Shown here one piece after another: positions 16,951 through 24,338 of a DNA stretch of 64,000 nucleotides (the first letter of the stretch is position 1; every line of letters starts with the position of its first letter). The DNA lies in assembly GCA_000708835.1 (NCBI GenBank), contig DF237337.1, forward strand, positions 1-64,000, read 5' to 3'. The notes under the pieces are model-generated. The model was given only the letters and a program-made list of their open reading frames with translations, was not told where the DNA came from and made no database searches. The stretch comes from Klebsormidium nitens (Eukaryota > Plantae > Klebsormidiophyceae). The position numbers were made by a program, and so were the translations under genes.

Positions 16951-18507
16951 CTACGACGGCTTCGAATAACTTAACCCCGGAAGTAATACCACATTCCTAA
17001 CCTTCAAACTAGCTCCGCAAAGGAGGGCCTTGATTCCTTGAGCCACCTCCTTCTCTATGTTCATGAAGCGCAGGGTGAGCTCTTTAAACTTAGGCAAGCG
17101 CCCGACCACGCTTGCAAGGAACAAAAGGTCGTCTTGTACGAAGGCCTCAGGCCGATATAGATCCAAACTGCGCAACTTTTGTAGGAGAGCCAGCTTTGGA
17201 ATGTCGTGGAAGTCAAAGGAGCACCGGAGCACCTCCATGCCCCCCATCTGCTCTAATAGTTCTGGCCAGGCGACGTGCGGCATGAGTGGGAGATTGGGAA
17301 GCTCTAAAACACGGAGAGAGGGGCATTGACTGAGCAGTTCTAGCACTCCTTTGGCGGGAATGCTGATTGGGGTGGCGATTGGAAAAGGTTGAGGATACAC
17401 ATCGAAAGATTCAAGAGTACGCGCTATCAGTGGCACACCTAACGTTAGCTGCTGGAGGGAAGTGCAGTGTTGCGCAAGACGGGAGAGGATGACATCTAGG
17501 TGTGGCACTGATATAGATCTGATGTCCAGTTTTGTCAGTTGGGGAAGACCCCTAAACAGGACTAAGAAAGCAGTCTCCGAAAGGCTTTGGTGATCTGGGA
17601 ACCTCAGTGCTTCGATGCTGGGAAAGACGGCGGGGAGTAGGGAGAGGAATTCGGATCGAAGTGAGGGCTGGCGTGGAGGAAGGTCAAAGCTGAGCTCTGT
17701 CATGCTGACCATTGGAGCAATCTTTCGCAAGGCCTTCATGAACTTGGTGTGCTCTATCCGACACGGTCCTGAGAAGGTGAGCTTCTCTAGACCTGTGAAC
17801 TGCCCTAGAGAGCTGACGATTGTCTCAAGAAACGAATGTTCTGGGAGCCCCATGTCAGACAGGTGGAGACTTTTCAGACTACTGAATGATGCGGAGAGGA
17901 TTCTGGTGAGCTCCAACGCAGACTGTGAGCCCCCCGACCGCTGAGGTGGATCACCCGGAAATATTGTTATGCTAGACCAGGCCCTCAAAGTGAGGGGATG
18001 CAGCCTTACCCAGGAGTGCCAGCTATCCGCAAACACCTCAAGTTCATCCACGTAAGGATTCATCTCTAAGGCTCTCTGGAGCAGCTTCATGGATTCAAGG
18101 ATTGGCAAGCGAAACCTTGAATCCCCCTGAAGCACCAGCTTTTTGCTGGCTGCGCGTGCAGCGTCACGCCAATCCTTAGAAACAGCCTTACAAGAGGCCA
18201 TGGTGACGATATCTCCTCCTGCCGCCATTTGAACTATCATCTCCGCCAGCAGGGAGGGAAGCTTGGCAAATGCTTCTATGCTGCAGTCTTTAGCTGCCTG
18301 GGCGTCAGAAGATGCACTGCTTTCCATGCCTGTTTTTCCGCTTGGGCTTCGTAAGCTCCAAGCAGGAAAGAAGCAGCTTCTTCTGTGGTTCCTTTTCCTT
18401 TCTGTTGCAAAGGCTCTCGCTGGTAATCTGCAAACAGCGTGGCTGCTATGATCACCCTTGATACTCAACTGGGGTGAACAGTCCACACGCTCTTTTATTC
18501 TTTGCAT
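16951..18507 (-). CDS. Intronless F-box-like / RNI-like leucine-rich-repeat protein (518-aa ORF; a likely start is the ATG at 18327, MESSASS)
   Basis: Single long ORF. F-box-like segment AFAKLPSLLAEMIVQMAAGGDIVTMASCKAVSKDWRDAA, followed by LRR-like units (LKSLHLSDMGL, LEKLTFSG, LTKLDIRS, LQQLTLG, LRVLELPN, LRSLDLYR). Confidence 0.75.
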   Translation of the reverse strand: MQRIKERVDCSPQLSIKGDHSSHAVCRLPARAFATERKRNHRRSCFFPAWSLRSPSGKTGMESSASSDAQAAKDCSIEAFAKLPSLLAEMIVQMAAGGDIVTMASCKAVSKDWRDAARAASKKLVLQGDSRFRLPILESMKLLQRALEMNPYVDELEVFADSWHSWVRLHPLTLRAWSSITIFPGDPPQRSGGSQSALELTRILSASFSSLKSLHLSDMGLPEHSFLETIVSSLGQFTGLEKLTFSGPCRIEHTKFMKALRKIAPMVSMTELSFDLPPRQPSLRSEFLSLLPAVFPSIEALRFPDHQSLSETAFLVLFRGLPQLTKLDIRSISVPHLDVILSRLAQHCTSLQQLTLGVPLIARTLESFDVYPQPFPIATPISIPAKGVLELLSQCPSLRVLELPNLPLMPHVAWPELLEQMGGMEVLRCSFDFHDIPKLALLQKLRSLDLYRPEAFVQDDLLFLASVVGRLPKFKELTLRFMNIEKEVAQGIKALLCGASLKVRNVVLLPGLSYSKPS

Positions 18508-19696
18508 CAGCAGGATGACAATCTTCGAGTCTTGGAAAGAAACTGTTCAGCTAGACTAGTTTTGAAGGCGCCCCTGGACTAAGAAAACCGCTATTAGACT
18601 ACGGTCCTTCAATGGTCTCGGTTGCTGTCGCGAAGCGCACTCCCTCGACCTTTCTTCCGACCGGTAGTACCCTACACCGGGCACTCGAGTCCAGTTCTTT
18701 ACCTGACAAAATCAGCCCTGGCGGGCCTAAGGCTACCGGTACATCCTCCTGGGCGAAATATTCAGTGGCGCCCGGCCGCCGCGCGTCGTGTTTTCTATAG
18801 TATACCCGCGCAGCCGCAGGCGCTGCCGCCGCCAGCACATGATGCTCAGTGCTGATATTGATATTGATATTGAAATTCTCGTCTAATTAAGAGCCAGCAT
18901 GCGCTCTGGTGCGAGCGCAGATCGAAGCAATGCAAATGTAAAACCCTGGCATAAGCCTTTGCCAGGTCGCCTTAACTGTGCTTTCTGGTTCTAGCTTTGG
19001 TACGCTCAAATTCTAATTTGAATGAGATATTGCCAGTACGATACTTTCCTTGCAATGCGCCATTGATTGCACCAGATTATGAAGGGCTCGATACCTGAAA
19101 ATAGTCCTTCTGTCGAGGTGACCCCCTTTCTAGCTTTAGGAACAACTGAGCGTGCACATGCATGTGACCAACCAGATATTGCCAGTTTCATAGTCGAAAA
19201 CAGTTTCACCACATGGTCAAACAACGATTTCAACACATCATCGGGCCGCAAGGCTCAAGTAGCCAAGACGAGCTGCGCCAACCGTAAATTAGTCTCCCAG
19301 AAAGTTATCTGGCATCTATATAGTACATGCAGGCCGGCCGGCCATCGAAGGAGCTAGACACTGACATGCGAACGTGGCCTTACAATTCCTCGTGGTGAAG
19401 CTTGTGTAGAAAGTGCCAGCCGGGCGTAATCGCGCATAATAGAATCTGAATTGACATGCCCTTGGTGATATTGGAATGCCCCAAGCTCAATTGGGGCAGA
19501 ACGTGCCACAAGTGCGATGATGCTGGTTCAAATGTACTTTTTGAGCGAGCTTAGGCAACCTTGGGCGTCTCAACACGGCATACCCTTTCTTGAGACGGTC
19601 TCAATGCGTTAAAGCGATACCGGAAAAATCAACCTGTTTGACTACTAGCGTTCATCTTTTTTTGAACCAACCCTGAGCCATCAGGGTACTTGGCTG

Positions 19697-22600
19697 TTAT
19701 TGTAGCAAGTCCTGTCCCGGTTGTTCCGATTCTGACGCATCTTTCGGTGATCCTATCCAGAAATACCAGGGAGCGCGGAGGATCGGCACGTATGGTATAC
19801 CGCCTTGACTATTCACCTCGACAACTGCGCATCAAGTAAGGAGTAATCAGAATCTTTCACGCTGGCTAAGATACTGTCAACATTCACTCGTCAGCAACAT
19901 GAGATGTTCTCAGCGTGGATGCAGGACTCTTCCAATCGCTGATTGATTCGGTAAACAAAGATCAGAAACCTTTCGGCCCCCAACTTAATGGAAGTTTTGA
20001 CGCCCTGCACCACCCCTGTATAACTTCAATGAAGAACTCAATGCGTTATTTACCTCCGAACATCAGAATCGAAGTCAGCGGCGCACAGCGCCCCGATCAG
20101 CACACTGCTTTCCTCAAGTATCCCTTTCGTGGCGCTCTTGCTCGAGACAAGGCACCGCCGACACACATAGACTTAATTCCACCGTCGGAGCTGAAGTCCG
20201 GTCTGCTCTGACTCGCACCCCCCCAACTCCACCGTTTGAGCATCATCAGAACAGATGGAGAAGGGACGGCTGGCGTCACTATCCGTCCAGCATCAAAAAG
20301 CAGCTGAAGAGGTACGGCTGACGTCACCTGTGTCCCGATTGTGGTCAAGCTATGCACGCCAGGTTGACGCTGCCCGGGTCCGAAATCAAACAACATCAAA
20401 ACAGGCGGGGAAAAGGCACAACTGACGTCACCTCTTTCCACTTCGTGGTCCAAAGATCGACAAAAACAGGCGGGGAAAGAGGTGCGGCTGACGTCACCTG
20501 TCTCCAGTTTGTGGTCCAGGTACGCGCGCCGCTCCGGCCCCAGGTTGATGTTGTCCAGGTCAAAGATGGCCTGCCAGAACCAGCGCCGGTAGTAGGGATG
20601 CTGCCGCTGCGGGCGGTCGTACTTTCCGGAGACATAAAAGTCGGCGATGCCGAGGAGACCCCCCGGGGCGAGCATGGAGAGGGCGTTGTCAACGGCAGCC
20701 ATGTAGGGGGGGATCACTGGCGAGAGAAACGGGGGGGGGGATTTAAGGTGGTCAGCAGATGAAGGGGGAGGGGGGAGTTGAAAGAATGAAGACGTGTTGA
20801 CGAAAAGTCATTTGCGGAAAAACACAAGGACGAATACAGATGGGAGGAGACTGGATCGAGGATGCTGCAAATATGAAAGGGAATAACAGATGCCCGACAA
20901 AGAGGGTCACAGCTGTCGGGAGAGAGTGAGAAGACTTGTACCCCTTGTCAACATTATCGTGATGAAACCTGAATGTAAATCCGATCGACGCTCTAACGCG
21001 TTATTCAGTGAAGCGGAAAGAAGAAATAGACGTGTACAACCAGCGAAGGGGGTAGATCGTTGGAAAATGTCTGATCGGATGAATTTCGGGGGTTGATCCT
21101 CCGACAAGAACAGGAGATGAAGAGCTGTATTGTCGTTTCGAAGATAAACCCCACGCCCAGCACGCAGTGTGAACGTTTTCATATAAAAGGGTCCCTGCCG
21201 ATTGGTGACTTTCCTTAACGGCTATCTGACGACCATTGAAACCAACAAAATGAGTTTCCTAACATCAACTAGACCCCCTCTCTTTATTCACTCGCTCTAC
21301 AACCATCTTATGGTCAGCCCTACGACCCATGGAAGAAAGAACATACGTTTCAATGTCTTTGTCGGGTAAGCAACAGCAGACAAACAGCGAAGAGTAATAG
21401 CAGACAAACCAGCTTGAATGTAAGGTTCGCTTAGCAGTAGTCAACTCACTTGACAGAGAGTAGGAGAAGGTCACGACAGTCGCCTTGTTGTCTGGTTGGA
21501 ATGTGCATGCGTCGCCCTCCACCACCTCTACGTTGTTCCAGCCCCGCTCTTTGGCCTTTGCCTTCGCAACGTCGCAGAGGGGAGAACACAGATCCACCAC
21601 GTAGATCTGCGTTTTAAAGTTTAGGTTTAATCCTCCTTGTTGTTTCTTAGAGAGCGGCCGTTTTGTTTATTTTCAGCAGGAATGTTGGGTAATCTTGCGG
21701 AGGGCCTAGGACAGGGCATGCAAAGGTTCATGACGGCTGATTATCTAATATCGGAAAAGAGTGGACATACTTACAAAGCTCTAAAACCACAGCGGGGGCC
21801 CCTCTCAGAGACGAGGTAAAGGGGAAAAAAACAGATGGAAAAGAGAGCTATTGAAGGCTTTCGACTGTGCGATTCACCCAACGGCCTTCAGTCAAAGTTT
21901 CAAAACGAAGCCGTACACATTTGAGTTATCATCAGATCATCACAAGTAAGTACACCGAGCTGGCCGTTCATTCCTTGTTAATCCATGGATGCTATAGTAA
22001 GCAGAACCTTGTGTGATGCAATTTTGCTGTCATCTACCGCACAGTTTTCACCTGAGCGCTTCCTTATGAGTGACACACGGCCCGAATGAAAATGGAGGAT
22101 TCTACCTTAGTCATGTCCCTAACTAAGTGGGACCGAAAAGCTGCATCTGTCTTGCATATCAGAGACCAACAGTTCCAGACTTGAGTCGCAGAGGATTGCA
22201 ATGCAGCTTTGAGCTCGACAATATCTAAAACTTGGGAGTTTGTTTGTGACTGGAGGACCTGAAAAAGACAAGCTTTGACACTATTTGCAGTTGAAAGAGT
22301 TCACTTCAGCCCTGCGCATGTCCATTGTTAGATATGTAACTTGTCCTTATTGTGAAAGGCTCACCTTCTCGAATCTGCTCAGGTCAATATAGTCTGCCAT
22401 CATCGCAACATTCTCCCCCGTACCGCCGCCTGCAAATGATGTAAAAAGAGGGCTTCAGCAATTGCCTTAAAGAAGCAGACTAGAAATCAAAGACAGAAGT
22501 GATCCTCCTATAGTTTTTCGAGGAATCTCAAACCTTCAATACCAAGAGCGTCAGGCAGGAGTACTCCACTCCTGAAAGGCACATGCCGTGCATCAACACC

Positions 22601-23489
22601 CATTCACACAGTGGTGCAGCTCAATCCAGAGTGCCTTCCTCATCCTGCAGCAATCGGAGACATCCTGCATAGCAACAACAACGTGGGCTGCCAGCCAAGT
22701 TCACCGGACCGACTCATTTGGTGCTCACAGATTGACCCCATGGATGAACAATGAAGTTTTTGCTCACCCAGATCTACCCAGGACACAGGCCCATCAAAAG
22801 CGGAGAGCTGCTTGGCAAGTTCTTTCAGCATAGGCCGCCGACCGTGCAGGAAGTTGGCTCGGAAGCGATCATCTGGAAGACGGGCACGAACCATGAGAAG
22901 AGTCGGTTCTTAACGAAGTCACAACTCTTCAACTTGATCATGTGAGCGCTCAACGCCCAGAATCCGAGCAGAGACTGGCAAAGATATGCCACAGAATCAA
23001 TCAGACTCCGAGTGTCAGGATTTCTAGGCGTCAGCAGAAGAATGCGACTATAGCAGAAGGCCTGTGCCAGCAGTGCCTTCCAGAGGAGAAGTGGTGGTGC
23101 TCAAAAGTTTCTCAGGAAACTTACAAGCGTGTGCTTGGCGGCCGTAGAAAGCGTCCAGCCTCTCCTGAAATCATAACCACCATACAGTGTCATTGATAGC
23201 TTTGGCTTCACAAATAGGTCCACGTAACGTGAAACGGAAGCATCGCAAAACACTGGCTGAAACAACAAAATAAACAGAATTGAGTCATACACCAAGAGGG
23301 TCTAGAAGTTGCACACCATAATTGCAGATTTGAACACTCTCAAACTCCAGCTGATCTGCAGATGGCAGCTCGTAAATACACAAACAGGCAAGTTTCAATA
23401 TATACTTTGTGTGTGTCGCCCTGCGCCTTCGCAAACCACATCGCCACCAGACACTCCATGTCTGTGTAAATACCCTTCACAAACTCCAT
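19697..23489 (-). CDS. btaB: Stand-alone BtaB-type SAM-dependent N-methyltransferase (N-terminal half of betaine lipid synthase BTA1), 7 exons, about 265 aa
   Basis: Exons about 23489-23406, 23164-23125, 22872-22768, 22429-22365, 21606-21450, 20716-20498 and 19824-19697 total 798 nt in frame. Motifs ERLDAFYGRQAHAYDRFRANFLHGRRPML, SAM motif WVDLGGGTGENV, IYVVDLCSPLC, VEGDACTF, TFSYSLSMIPP, GIADFYVS and NSQGGIPYVPILRAPWYFWIG match the BtaB domain of algal BTA1. Stop follows 17 codons later. Confidence 0.88.
20250..20520 (-). repeat. Three degenerate copies of the btaB exon 6 donor junction
   Basis: CTGGACCACAAACTGGAGACAG|GTGACGTCAGCCGCACCTCTTTCCCCGCCTGTTTT recurs at about 20458-20396, 20350-20300 and 20290-20250. 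Confidence 0.85.
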
Positions 23490-24338
23490 GGCGCCCCAGC
23501 CAATCGACGACAAATAAGTTTTCAGGACTAATAGAAGGAATCTCTTGGCTCTCTTCCCTCCTCCTGAAGGCTGTTCAAAGCTGATACAGATCCGTGAAAG
23601 CGGCTAATACTAACACTGACAGGATCTGCTCATGCAAGCTTTCTCCGGCCAGAAAAGTGTGCAGCTGCAAGCTAGATGATAGATCTGCAATGCTGGCATT
23701 GGGGTTTGTGGCTTGTTTGCGGCCAGAAAGCCCTAATTCAACTTCGAGGTTTAGCCAGGGGTCGCAAGCTGCCAGGCAAATTGGTGAGGAAGCAGAAAAG
23801 CAGGGGGTCCACCGCGAGTGCCCATCCAAATTTTTGCATGCAAGTTCTGGACACCTTGCCCTGCAAAACTGCCAATTTTCCGGGGCGGCATAAGCGGTGG
23901 ACCAGTGCTTTCTGCATTTATCAGCGAATCAAAATGATTAAATAGCAGGGCAAAAATGCAGATTCTACGAACAAAATTGAACAGTTATAAGCAGACAGCA
24001 TCTAATTGGTGGATTCACCAATAGTAGCCAAATCTTCGTCAGCAAGTGGTCATACGTGCGATACCGCGATCCTATAACCTGGCAGTGCGGGTTCTGCTTC
24101 CCCAACCCTCAAGCTGGCAGCTTGCGACCCCTGGGTTTAGCGCTGAGCGGGAGGAGGCGCCAATCTGCACTTTGATTCTGGAACGCTGCATTTGTTTGGC
24201 AGCATCCTCGATTCCTACTATTAGAGACTTTGTGTCAGGTTTTCTGTGCTCATCATATGCGTGGGACGGGACCGGTGCCGGACAGGATTGGCACGAGAAA
24301 AAGAATGAAGCAAGCAAAGACGTTGGTGGCGAGGGACC

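Follow-up and report, generated by a model that had tools for sequence, protein, structure and literature searches.

A gene of Klebsormidium nitens that appears to encode the methyltransferase BtaB on its own raises the question of what such a protein would do in a eukaryote, and whether its partner BtaA is encoded as a separate gene. DGTS is a phosphorus-free membrane lipid, and bacterial BtaB, of the type found in the btaA-btaB operons of Rhodobacter sphaeroides, is an S-adenosylmethionine:diacylglycerylhomoserine N-methyltransferase. Eukaryotic DGTS synthesis is ascribed to the single bifunctional enzyme BTA1, and separate BtaA and BtaB proteins are considered a prokaryotic trait (PMC10685587, PMC8752610). 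In the BTA1 of green algae and non-seed plants, the BtaB half is N-terminal and the BtaA/DUF3419 half C-terminal (type B), and the enzymes from Chlamydomonas and Chlorella kessleri have been characterised (PMC8752610). Our literature search found no published description of a stand-alone eukaryotic BtaB or of BTA1 paralogues, nor a published report of DGTS in Klebsormidium. The sequence-only reading of the locus had proposed a eukaryotic BtaB ending at the BtaB/BtaA boundary and had left two explanations side by side, a gene fission and a BtaB-only paralogue.

Gene structure and transcripts

As read from the sequence, the gene occupies the minus strand with seven exons (CDS 23489..19697), and its 798-nt CDS encodes 265 aa ending in IPYVPILRAPWYFWIGSPKDASESEQPGQDLLQ, followed by a TAA stop at 19699-19697 (Table 1). 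All six introns were confirmed at their predicted positions by contigs from four public runs, representing four studies and two organism labels, and the six joints read CT..AC on the plus strand, corresponding to GT..AG on the gene strand. The runs had been labelled 'RNA?' by guess, and it is the splice joints that show their RNA origin. Single spliced contigs of 1176-1212 nt from runs X9 and X17 start at about 23671/23633 and end at 19465/19463. The contig 3' ends agree within 3 nt (19463-19465) across three contigs from three studies, and contigs as such are no proof of a poly(A) site. Depth falls to zero from 18674 to 19421, beyond which lies the next gene's own contig. We also looked for what would speak against a stand-alone gene according to the sequence-only reading, namely transcripts running from exon 6 or 7 into a BtaA exon, or no expression at all. 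Spliced contigs were present in the four public runs, and none of them left exon 6 or 7 for further coding exons, whether of BtaA or otherwise.

The public protein record GAQ87922.1 (P0167, 265 aa), which served as our full-length sequence, matches all seven exons and is identical to the exon-by-exon translation. Its annotation names no more than a SAM methyltransferase of generic type from Klebsormidium nitens. The seven-exon gene of about 265 aa with its C-terminus, as proposed earlier, thus agrees with the sequence, the spliced contigs and this record. Low-depth contigs cover parts of intron 6.

Table 1. Positions of the stand-alone BtaB gene and its parts on the 64 kb stretch
Feature	Position	Strand	Evidence or remark
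Transcription unit	19463..23671	-	spliced contigs, runs X9 and X17; spliced mRNA about 1.2 kb
5' UTR	about 23671-23490	-	
Exon 1, coding part (aa 1-28), ATG at 23489, N-terminal helix as in BTA1	23406..23489	-	sequence; joint 23164/23406; tblastn of GAQ87922.1
Exon 2 (aa 29-41), ERLDAFYGRQAHA	23125..23164	-	joints 23164/23406 and 22872/23125 in four runs
Exon 3 (aa 42-77), closes with the opening part of SAM motif I (WVDLG)	22768..22872	-	joints; tblastn 100% identity
Exon 4 (aa 77-98), finishes motif I, GGTGENV	22365..22429	-	joints 22429/22768 and 21606/22365
Exon 5 (aa 99-151), VVDLC acidic loop, EGDAC, FSYSLS	21450..21606	-	joints; Pfam Methyltransf_25/11 on exon 5 alone
Exon 6 (aa 151-224), BtaB-specific region ADFYVSGKYD..RQH..RWFW..FD.D.I.LGPERR.YL	20498..20716	-	72-aa query search
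Two degenerate copies of exon 6 end plus splice donor, inside intron 6	20307-20360 (85%), 20411-20464 (65%)	-	repeat search, family D1; reference copy 20477-20530
Exon 7, coding part (aa 224-265), IPYVPILRAPWYFWIG, then 17-aa tail and TAA	19697..19824	-	joint 19824/20498
3' UTR	19696 to about 19463	-	about 230 nt past stop

We searched the window, that is, the whole 64 kb stretch of DNA analysed, by tblastn with the BtaA halves of one algal BTA1, Sphagnum BTA1 and K. nitens' own BTA1, and found no BtaA/DUF3419 sequence (best E 1.2-2.1, chance level). The BtaB halves of the BTA1 probes matched the exons of the stand-alone gene with E down to 1e-31. Pfam detected no DUF3419 in the 265-aa product, and BtaB and BtaA are therefore not combined in one polypeptide. 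The two earlier claims, that the window lacks BtaA-like sequence and that the protein is a stand-alone eukaryotic BtaB stopping at the domain boundary, were upheld by these searches together with the transcript end.

The fused BTA1 of the same genome

Elsewhere in the K. nitens genome, a search with a Sphagnum BtaA query located a full-length fused BTA1 (P0330, contig DF238167.1) of 683 aa, containing both a methyltransferase and DUF3419 (381 bits) and annotated as 'betaine lipid synthase [Klebsormidium nitens]'. Its BtaB half is apparently intact, and its DUF3419 half would give the organism a BtaA that makes the substrate for BtaB. A BTA1 fragment from JGI metagenome data (P0005) is about 90% identical to it, suggesting that a related Klebsormidium probably keeps BTA1 too. 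The stand-alone protein is collinear with BTA1 from residue 1 and shares the N-terminal helix, the SAM motifs and the C-terminal IPYVP..W.G motif, but it lacks the linker and the BtaA/DUF3419 half and ends 17 aa past the BtaB domain. Where fused BTA1 continues from IPYVPILRAPWYFWIG into the linker and FPPTFLYS.SWEDP, the stand-alone protein has only its 17-aa tail. Two intron positions are common to both K. nitens genes, whereas the stand-alone gene has four extra introns and a separate locus.

No K. nitens protein consisting of BtaA alone turned up among the 120 relatives closest to a streptophyte BtaA domain. When eight BtaA domains were used for a profile search, the listed matches were dominated by chlorophytes and K. 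nitens was not among them; the short DUF3419-only matches in that search were cut fused BTA1 proteins. Likewise, the Chara protein annotated 'DUF3419 only' (P0335) is a 5'-truncated fused BTA1 and no BtaA-only gene. A word search with the exon 6 region, taken within its 206-aa ORF, gave two proteins; one of them, P0002, is the N-terminal part of a fused BTA1 that gene calling had truncated, and DUF3419 follows directly after it.

Gene fission, in which an ancestral BTA1 was split into BtaB and BtaA genes to give a two-gene DGTS pathway as in bacteria, would account for a protein that stops exactly at the BtaB/BtaA linker and for a window without BtaA. It fails because K. nitens has the complete fused BTA1 on DF238167.1; the probable BTA1 of a related Klebsormidium and the lack of a K. 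nitens stand-alone BtaA among those 120 relatives also speak against it, and we regard it as scarcely credible. The genome search that the sequence-only reading had suggested thus removed one of its two alternatives, the fission, and left the BtaB-only paralogue standing.

Conservation and ancestry of the stand-alone protein

Pfam assigned the 265-aa protein to Methyltransf_25 (45 bits against a cut-off of 27); Methyltransf_23, Methyltransf_11 and Ubie likewise exceeded their cut-offs, and the alignment showed SAM motif I (VDLGGGTGENV), the acidic loop VVDLC and EGDAC to be all present. The protein is 60% identical to residues 5-258 of Sphagnum BTA1 over 255 aa, 63% identical to the BtaB half of K. 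nitens BTA1 and 57-64% identical to the BtaB halves of 30 other green BTA1 proteins, in collinear alignments. Identity to the bacterial proteins P0134 and P0148, whose genes directly follow DUF3419 genes in compact operons, is 36-39% over the full length; the P0134 loci also adjoin PhoX and PhnJ. With exon 6 as a 72-aa query, a search of 1.84 billion proteins gave only 290 matches, and those of full length have DUF3419 following the matched region. Single-exon Pfam/NCBIfam searches returned just generic methyltransferase matches on exon 5 and no family-specific one, and an ESM Atlas feature search with exon 6 gave short generic methyltransferase clusters only.

At every one of the 31 invariant and the 38 nearly invariant columns in an alignment of 26 family members, the stand-alone protein has the conserved residue, also in the C-terminal BtaB-specific region outside the SAM-binding core. 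Adding fragments and the fern BtaB halves, which have decayed, still leaves 15 invariant columns. The AlphaFold model (pLDDT 90, pTM 0.87) has a class I methyltransferase fold. Of the 50 solved structures listed as matches, the bacterial phosphatidylethanolamine N-methyltransferase 8ys9 gave the highest query TM-score (0.61; target TM 0.76). This enzyme, PmtA, is also of class I and methylates a lipid head-group amine three times, but at only 20% identity, and without the N-terminal helices and C-terminal beta hairpin specific to BtaB, it is a functional analogue rather than a member of the same family. By its sequence and model, the K. nitens product is a class I SAM-dependent methyltransferase and a full-length homologue of bacterial BtaB.

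An orthologue occurs on a metagenome contig of a related Klebsormidium (L005), and the reading frame is intact in both species. Over 244 codons, the pair shows pN of 0.097 and pS of 0.606, with dN/dS of about 0.08 and synonymous sites near saturation; by this measure, the gene is evidently under strong purifying selection in Klebsormidium. Stand-alone BtaB genes of a comparable kind exist in other streptophytes. L005 and three further loci (L010, L011, L013) each have a SAM-motif exon and each end 7-25 aa past the IPYVP..W.G motif, and no BtaA was found downstream of them within the 3-10 kb examined. A transcript of the hornwort Nothoceros (P0029) terminates likewise just past the BtaB domain. 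At the fern Adiantum locus, only the last two exons of a stand-alone copy were found.

Fused streptophyte BTA1 domains, including that of K. nitens BTA1, form a clade in the maximum-likelihood tree of BtaB domains that we built as the earlier reading had proposed (support 99/91), and the K. nitens stand-alone protein falls outside it. The land-plant stand-alone genes form a clade of their own (97/97) with a stem length of 0.56 and with signature residues such as DDHFRARF and RQHGY.TRWFW. The trees do not join them with the Klebsormidium group in a resolved clade. The K. nitens stand-alone branch is moderately long (0.44, versus 0.1-0.33 for most streptophyte BTA1 domains). This full-length tree was built without L005, L010, L011 and L013, which entered the analysis as single-exon translations. 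A tree of the SAM-binding-region exon (110 columns) conflicts with it and is too weak to place the stand-alone protein. By maximum likelihood, the preferred history is an old duplication that preceded the divergence of Klebsormidium and land plants, whereas the AU test, in which a topology pairing the protein with K. nitens BTA1 as sisters was not rejected (p = 0.30), allows a duplication within the Klebsormidium lineage followed by faster change.

The K. nitens protein resembles bacterial BtaB as a stand-alone methyltransferase of about 190-280 aa with invariant residues in common, but its gene is eukaryotic, has introns and adjoins no btaA. In the tree, it is nested in the green-lineage BTA1 radiation and not with bacteria; therefore, the stand-alone state is secondary, arising by loss from the fused form or by its partial duplication, and was not kept from the bacterial arrangement.

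A possible role in trans with BTA1

As the best explanation, which we hold with moderate confidence, we propose a BtaB-only paralogue of BTA1 that methylates DGTS precursors in trans. The protein would catalyse SAM-dependent N-methylation of the homoserine head group, on diacylglycerylhomoserine or its mono-/dimethyl intermediates, to yield DGTS, with the lipid produced by the BtaA half of BTA1 as its substrate. This may provide extra capacity for methylation, open to regulation of its own, which we propose because each BtaA reaction calls for three methyl transfers. The pattern of conservation points to unchanged chemistry and against a new reaction. Ferns, which are reported to make DGTS, may lend the action in trans some indirect support. 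The BtaB half of fern BTA1 has decayed (GGGTG to GDGSE, VVDLC to VVN-C, EGDAC lost), its Pfam methyltransferase scores are below threshold, and Adiantum has the partial stand-alone copy, of which the two exons leave the fern argument incomplete.

Two other accounts of the paralogue were weighed. The gene could be a non-catalytic or decaying partial duplicate of BTA1, transcribed but without an enzymatic role, or with the sole task of binding or regulating BTA1; in favour of this, it copies just part of a larger gene, and exon-end debris is duplicated in its intron 6. This account is hard to reconcile with the low dN/dS at near-saturated synonymous sites, the frame kept intact in two species, the retained SAM-binding and family-invariant residues and the spliced transcripts from four studies, and we think it very improbable. 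Together with the confident methyltransferase model, the same observations agree with the initial view that the gene is no pseudogene. More serious, if still considerably less probable than the role in DGTS synthesis, is neofunctionalisation, with the BtaB fold acting on a different amine (another amino lipid, a lyso form or a soluble homoserine/amino-acid derivative) outside DGTS synthesis. Long-kept gene duplicates often take on a new role, the identity to any BTA1 domain is only about 60-64%, the protein lies outside the fused-BTA1 clade, and the land-plant stand-alone genes have their long stem and own signatures. Moreover, with the BtaB half of the coexisting BTA1 looking intact, it is not evident why a further DGHS methyltransferase would be required, and the moderately long K. 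nitens branch could mean a changed substrate. However, every residue invariant from bacterial BtaB to plant BTA1 is kept, the C-terminal BtaB-specific region included, and fern BTA1, seemingly devoid of its own methyltransferase residues in plants reported to contain DGTS, calls for a BtaB in trans.

Returning to methylation in trans, we can extend this reading, as a tentative and rather doubtful scenario, to an ancient streptophyte lineage of stand-alone BtaB in Klebsormidium, hornworts, ferns and others. Its members would work in trans with BTA1 and, in ferns, might have wholly replaced the N-methylation by BTA1 so that its methyltransferase half decays, or else might methylate a different head group.

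A conserved, expressed BtaB-only gene beside BTA1 suggests that streptophytes can encode the methylation step separately, which may bear on the balance and regulation of DGTS synthesis, for example, under phosphate shortage. For predicting DGTS capacity from genomes, counting DUF3419 or BTA1 alone would miss stand-alone BtaB, and a fern BTA1 whose methyltransferase half has decayed might wrongly be judged sufficient for DGTS. Such a separate methyltransferase may also be relevant for engineering DGTS into seed plants.

Gene model and transcripts

Reading of the minus-strand sequence gave a gene of seven exons with GT..AG introns, in which a CDS of 798 nt encodes a protein of 265 aa ending in ...IPYVPILRAPWYFWIGSPKDASESEQPGQDLLQ and a stop codon. 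Transcript contigs from four public runs, which belong to four studies and bear two organism labels, were placed over 18300-23900, and 6/6 exon joints fell exactly at the predicted positions. That the runs are RNA is a guess, but the spliced forms must derive from RNA. The public record GAQ87922.1 (P0167, 265 aa), used as a full-length reference where exon-wise references had served before, matches 7/7 exons and is identical to our exon-by-exon reading. The gene at 19697-23489 proposed in the sequence-only reading is thus borne out by the sequence, the six contig joints and this record, which is already public under a generic name only, 'S-adenosyl-L-methionine-dependent methyltransferases [Klebsormidium nitens]'.

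Coding exons of the window gene
Feature	Position	Strand	Evidence
Exon 1 (coding)	23489-23406	minus	sequence reading + contig joints
Exon 2	23164-23125	minus	sequence reading + contig joints
Exon 3	22872-22768	minus	sequence reading + contig joints
Exon 4	22429-22365	minus	sequence reading + contig joints
Exon 5	21606-21450	minus	sequence reading + contig joints
Exon 6	20716-20498	minus	sequence reading + contig joints
Exon 7 (coding)	19824-19697	minus	sequence reading + contig joints

The spliced contigs, each a single one of 1176-1212 nt, ran from about 23671/23633 to 19465/19463, and in three studies their 3' ends lay within 3 nt of one another, contigs as such having no power to prove a poly(A) site. 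Depth was zero over 18674-19421, and the downstream gene, a minus-strand ORF of 518 aa (16951-18507), was transcribed on its own contigs of ~1.9 kb extending to about 18580-18590. The transcript evidence therefore agrees with the proposed 3' end. For the downstream ORF, previously called an F-box gene, Pfam yielded no F-box domain at E <= 0.01 and a sub-threshold LRR_4 match alone.

Within intron 6, the end of exon 6 is repeated (window 20307-20530) in two extra copies of 85% and 65% identity; the unit joins the terminal ~30 nt of exon 6 to the splice donor and ~20 intronic nt (CAG followed by GTGACGTCAGCC..., including TGACGTCA), and parts of the intron are covered by low-depth contigs. In intron 4, a contig of depth ~3 covers 22007-22242 in two runs and extends at 22007 by 121-255 nt absent from the window (…ATTGTGAATGCTATTGACCTGGTTGTCAAT); a minor transcript (alternative, antisense or chimeric) or a repeat located elsewhere could account for it.

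Family identity and the missing BtaA half

Single exons matched generic class I methyltransferases alone in Pfam and NCBIfam, and the full-length protein exceeded the Pfam cut-offs for Methyltransf_25, Methyltransf_23, Methyltransf_11 and Ubie_methyltran, with DUF3419 absent. A search of 1.84 billion representative proteins with the 72 aa of exon 6 returned 290 relatives and no more; those of full length (about 600-860 aa) have the match at residues ~160-240 and DUF3419 after it, which identifies them as type B BTA1. Residues 5-258 of Sphagnum BTA1 share 60% identity with the window protein over 255 aa, and 30 further BTA1 proteins of the green lineage are 57-64% identical to it in their BtaB halves. 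Two short homologues, P0134 and P0148, are 36-39% identical over the full length; their genes directly follow DUF3419 genes in compact prokaryote-style operons, with PhoX and PhnJ also adjoining the P0134 loci, and represent bacterial btaA-btaB.

All 31 invariant columns of a 26-member alignment are kept in the window protein, including the SAM motifs VDLGGGTGENV, VVDLC and EGDAC and the BtaB-specific C-terminal region. Its AlphaFold model, a confident one (pLDDT 90.2, pTM 0.87), has a class I fold; the 50 structural matches listed include no BtaB structure, and the highest query TM-score among them (0.61) belongs to a functional analogue, bacterial phosphatidylethanolamine N-methyltransferase.

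Fused BTA1 proteins continue from the motif IPYVP..W.G through a linker of 25-45 aa into FPPTFLYS.SWEDP, whereas the window protein has 17 residues and a stop after the motif. In tblastn against the 64-kb window, BtaA halves from three sources (an algal BTA1 of an ENA assembly, Sphagnum BTA1 and K. nitens' own BTA1) gave chance-level matches alone (best E 1.2-2.1), as the reported absence of BtaA-like sequence had implied, while BtaB halves matched the window exons with E down to 1e-31.

Relation to the fused BTA1 of K. nitens

The BtaA half of Sphagnum BTA1 retrieved P0330, a protein of 683 aa annotated as 'betaine lipid synthase [Klebsormidium nitens]'. P0330 carries methyltransferase and DUF3419 domains, and its gene lies on another contig, DF238167.1. 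The window protein shares 63% identity with the BtaB half of P0330, in which the family-invariant residues are kept. K. nitens thus has a complete BTA1 and a separate BtaB-only gene. Of the two origins suggested earlier, fission into a two-gene pathway is contradicted by P0330, and the BtaB-only paralogue stands.

The BtaB half of the BTA1 gene comprises three exons, and both of its intron positions (after about aa 41 and 150 of the window protein) recur in the window gene alongside four more introns. The two shared positions point to duplication at the DNA level rather than a retrocopy. At the position of window intron 6 (after ...LE), the K. nitens BTA1 gene (L009, 4299-8989) has no intron, and BTA1 fragments of a related Klebsormidium and of other streptophytes continue into one; K. 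nitens BTA1 seems to have lost it.

The phylogeny proposed earlier, built by maximum likelihood from 49 BtaB domains, placed the window protein within the streptophyte clade (98/94) and outside the clade that unites 24 BtaB domains of fused streptophyte BTA1, K. nitens BTA1 included (99/91). A sister placement with K. nitens BTA1 was not rejected by an AU test (p = 0.30), and the evidence favours an old duplication without proving it. In a related Klebsormidium, metagenome contig L005 bears an orthologue with 7/7 exons and its own stop 11 aa past the domain, with no BtaA within 10 kb. Between the two genes, pN was 0.097 and pS 0.606 (244 codons, summed per exon), a dN/dS of about 0.08 that is rough as synonymous sites are near saturation. 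The window gene is clearly under purifying selection, which, with its spliced transcripts and invariant residues, supports the earlier argument against a pseudogene.

Proposed function and other stand-alone BtaB genes

Eukaryotic DGTS synthesis is ascribed to the fused enzyme BTA1, with BtaA and BtaB as two proteins regarded as prokaryotic (PMC10685587, PMC8752610); the searchable literature yielded no mention of BtaB-only paralogues and no report of DGTS in Klebsormidium. Judged by conservation, the best-supported reading is that the window protein would still use SAM to N-methylate the homoserine head group, acting in trans on diacylglycerylhomoserine or partly methylated forms supplied by the BtaA half of BTA1. 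The main rival, a changed substrate, would suit a protein that coexists with an intact BTA1 and lies outside the BTA1 clade, but the complete retention of family-invariant residues speaks against it.

Fern BTA1 proteins (P0292 from Ceratopteris, P0082 from Adiantum, P0291, P0321 and P0322) have a decayed BtaB half beside a still strong DUF3419 half. This BtaB half has lost the first ~40 conserved residues as well as EGDAC, with GDGSE or GDGSD in place of GGGTG and VVN-C in place of VVDLC; the branch is very long, at 1.13 substitutions per site, and Pfam methyltransferase scores fall short of the threshold. Since DGTS has been reported in ferns, a trans-acting methyltransferase would be needed there, and the methylation step may depend on another enzyme. 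The argument is incomplete in that the stand-alone-type locus of Adiantum yielded its last two exons alone, within the 37 kb available.

Several exon-sized matches to exon 6 were closer to a stand-alone Adiantum protein than to any BTA1. Stand-alone genes occur in ~40% GC assemblies, a hornwort-like contig and Adiantum (L010, L011/L012, L013 and L002), with the signature residues DDHFRARF, RQHGY.TRWFW and LLKVPYYIWLG. The loci L010, L011/L012 and L013 each have a SAM-motif exon (VWVDLGGGTGQNV or GGGTAENV, then VVDIC) and a stop codon 7-25 aa beyond IPYVP..W.G, with no BtaA within the 3-10 kb available downstream; a transcript of the hornwort Nothoceros aenigmaticus (P0029), close to L013, ends in the same way. 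In a tree of the C-terminal region, which gives no branching order among its three groups, eight such sequences form a well-supported clade (97/97), distinct from both the two Klebsormidium sequences (94/95) and the domains of fused BTA1 (80/88). Two more stand-alone-looking BtaB-like transcripts, P0033 (269 aa, L003) and P0036 (234 aa, L004), nest with trebouxiophyte BTA1 of Coccomyxa and Myrmecia (99/90). Their position suggests an independent origin in chlorophytes, and BtaB-only genes may thus have had more than one origin among green algae.
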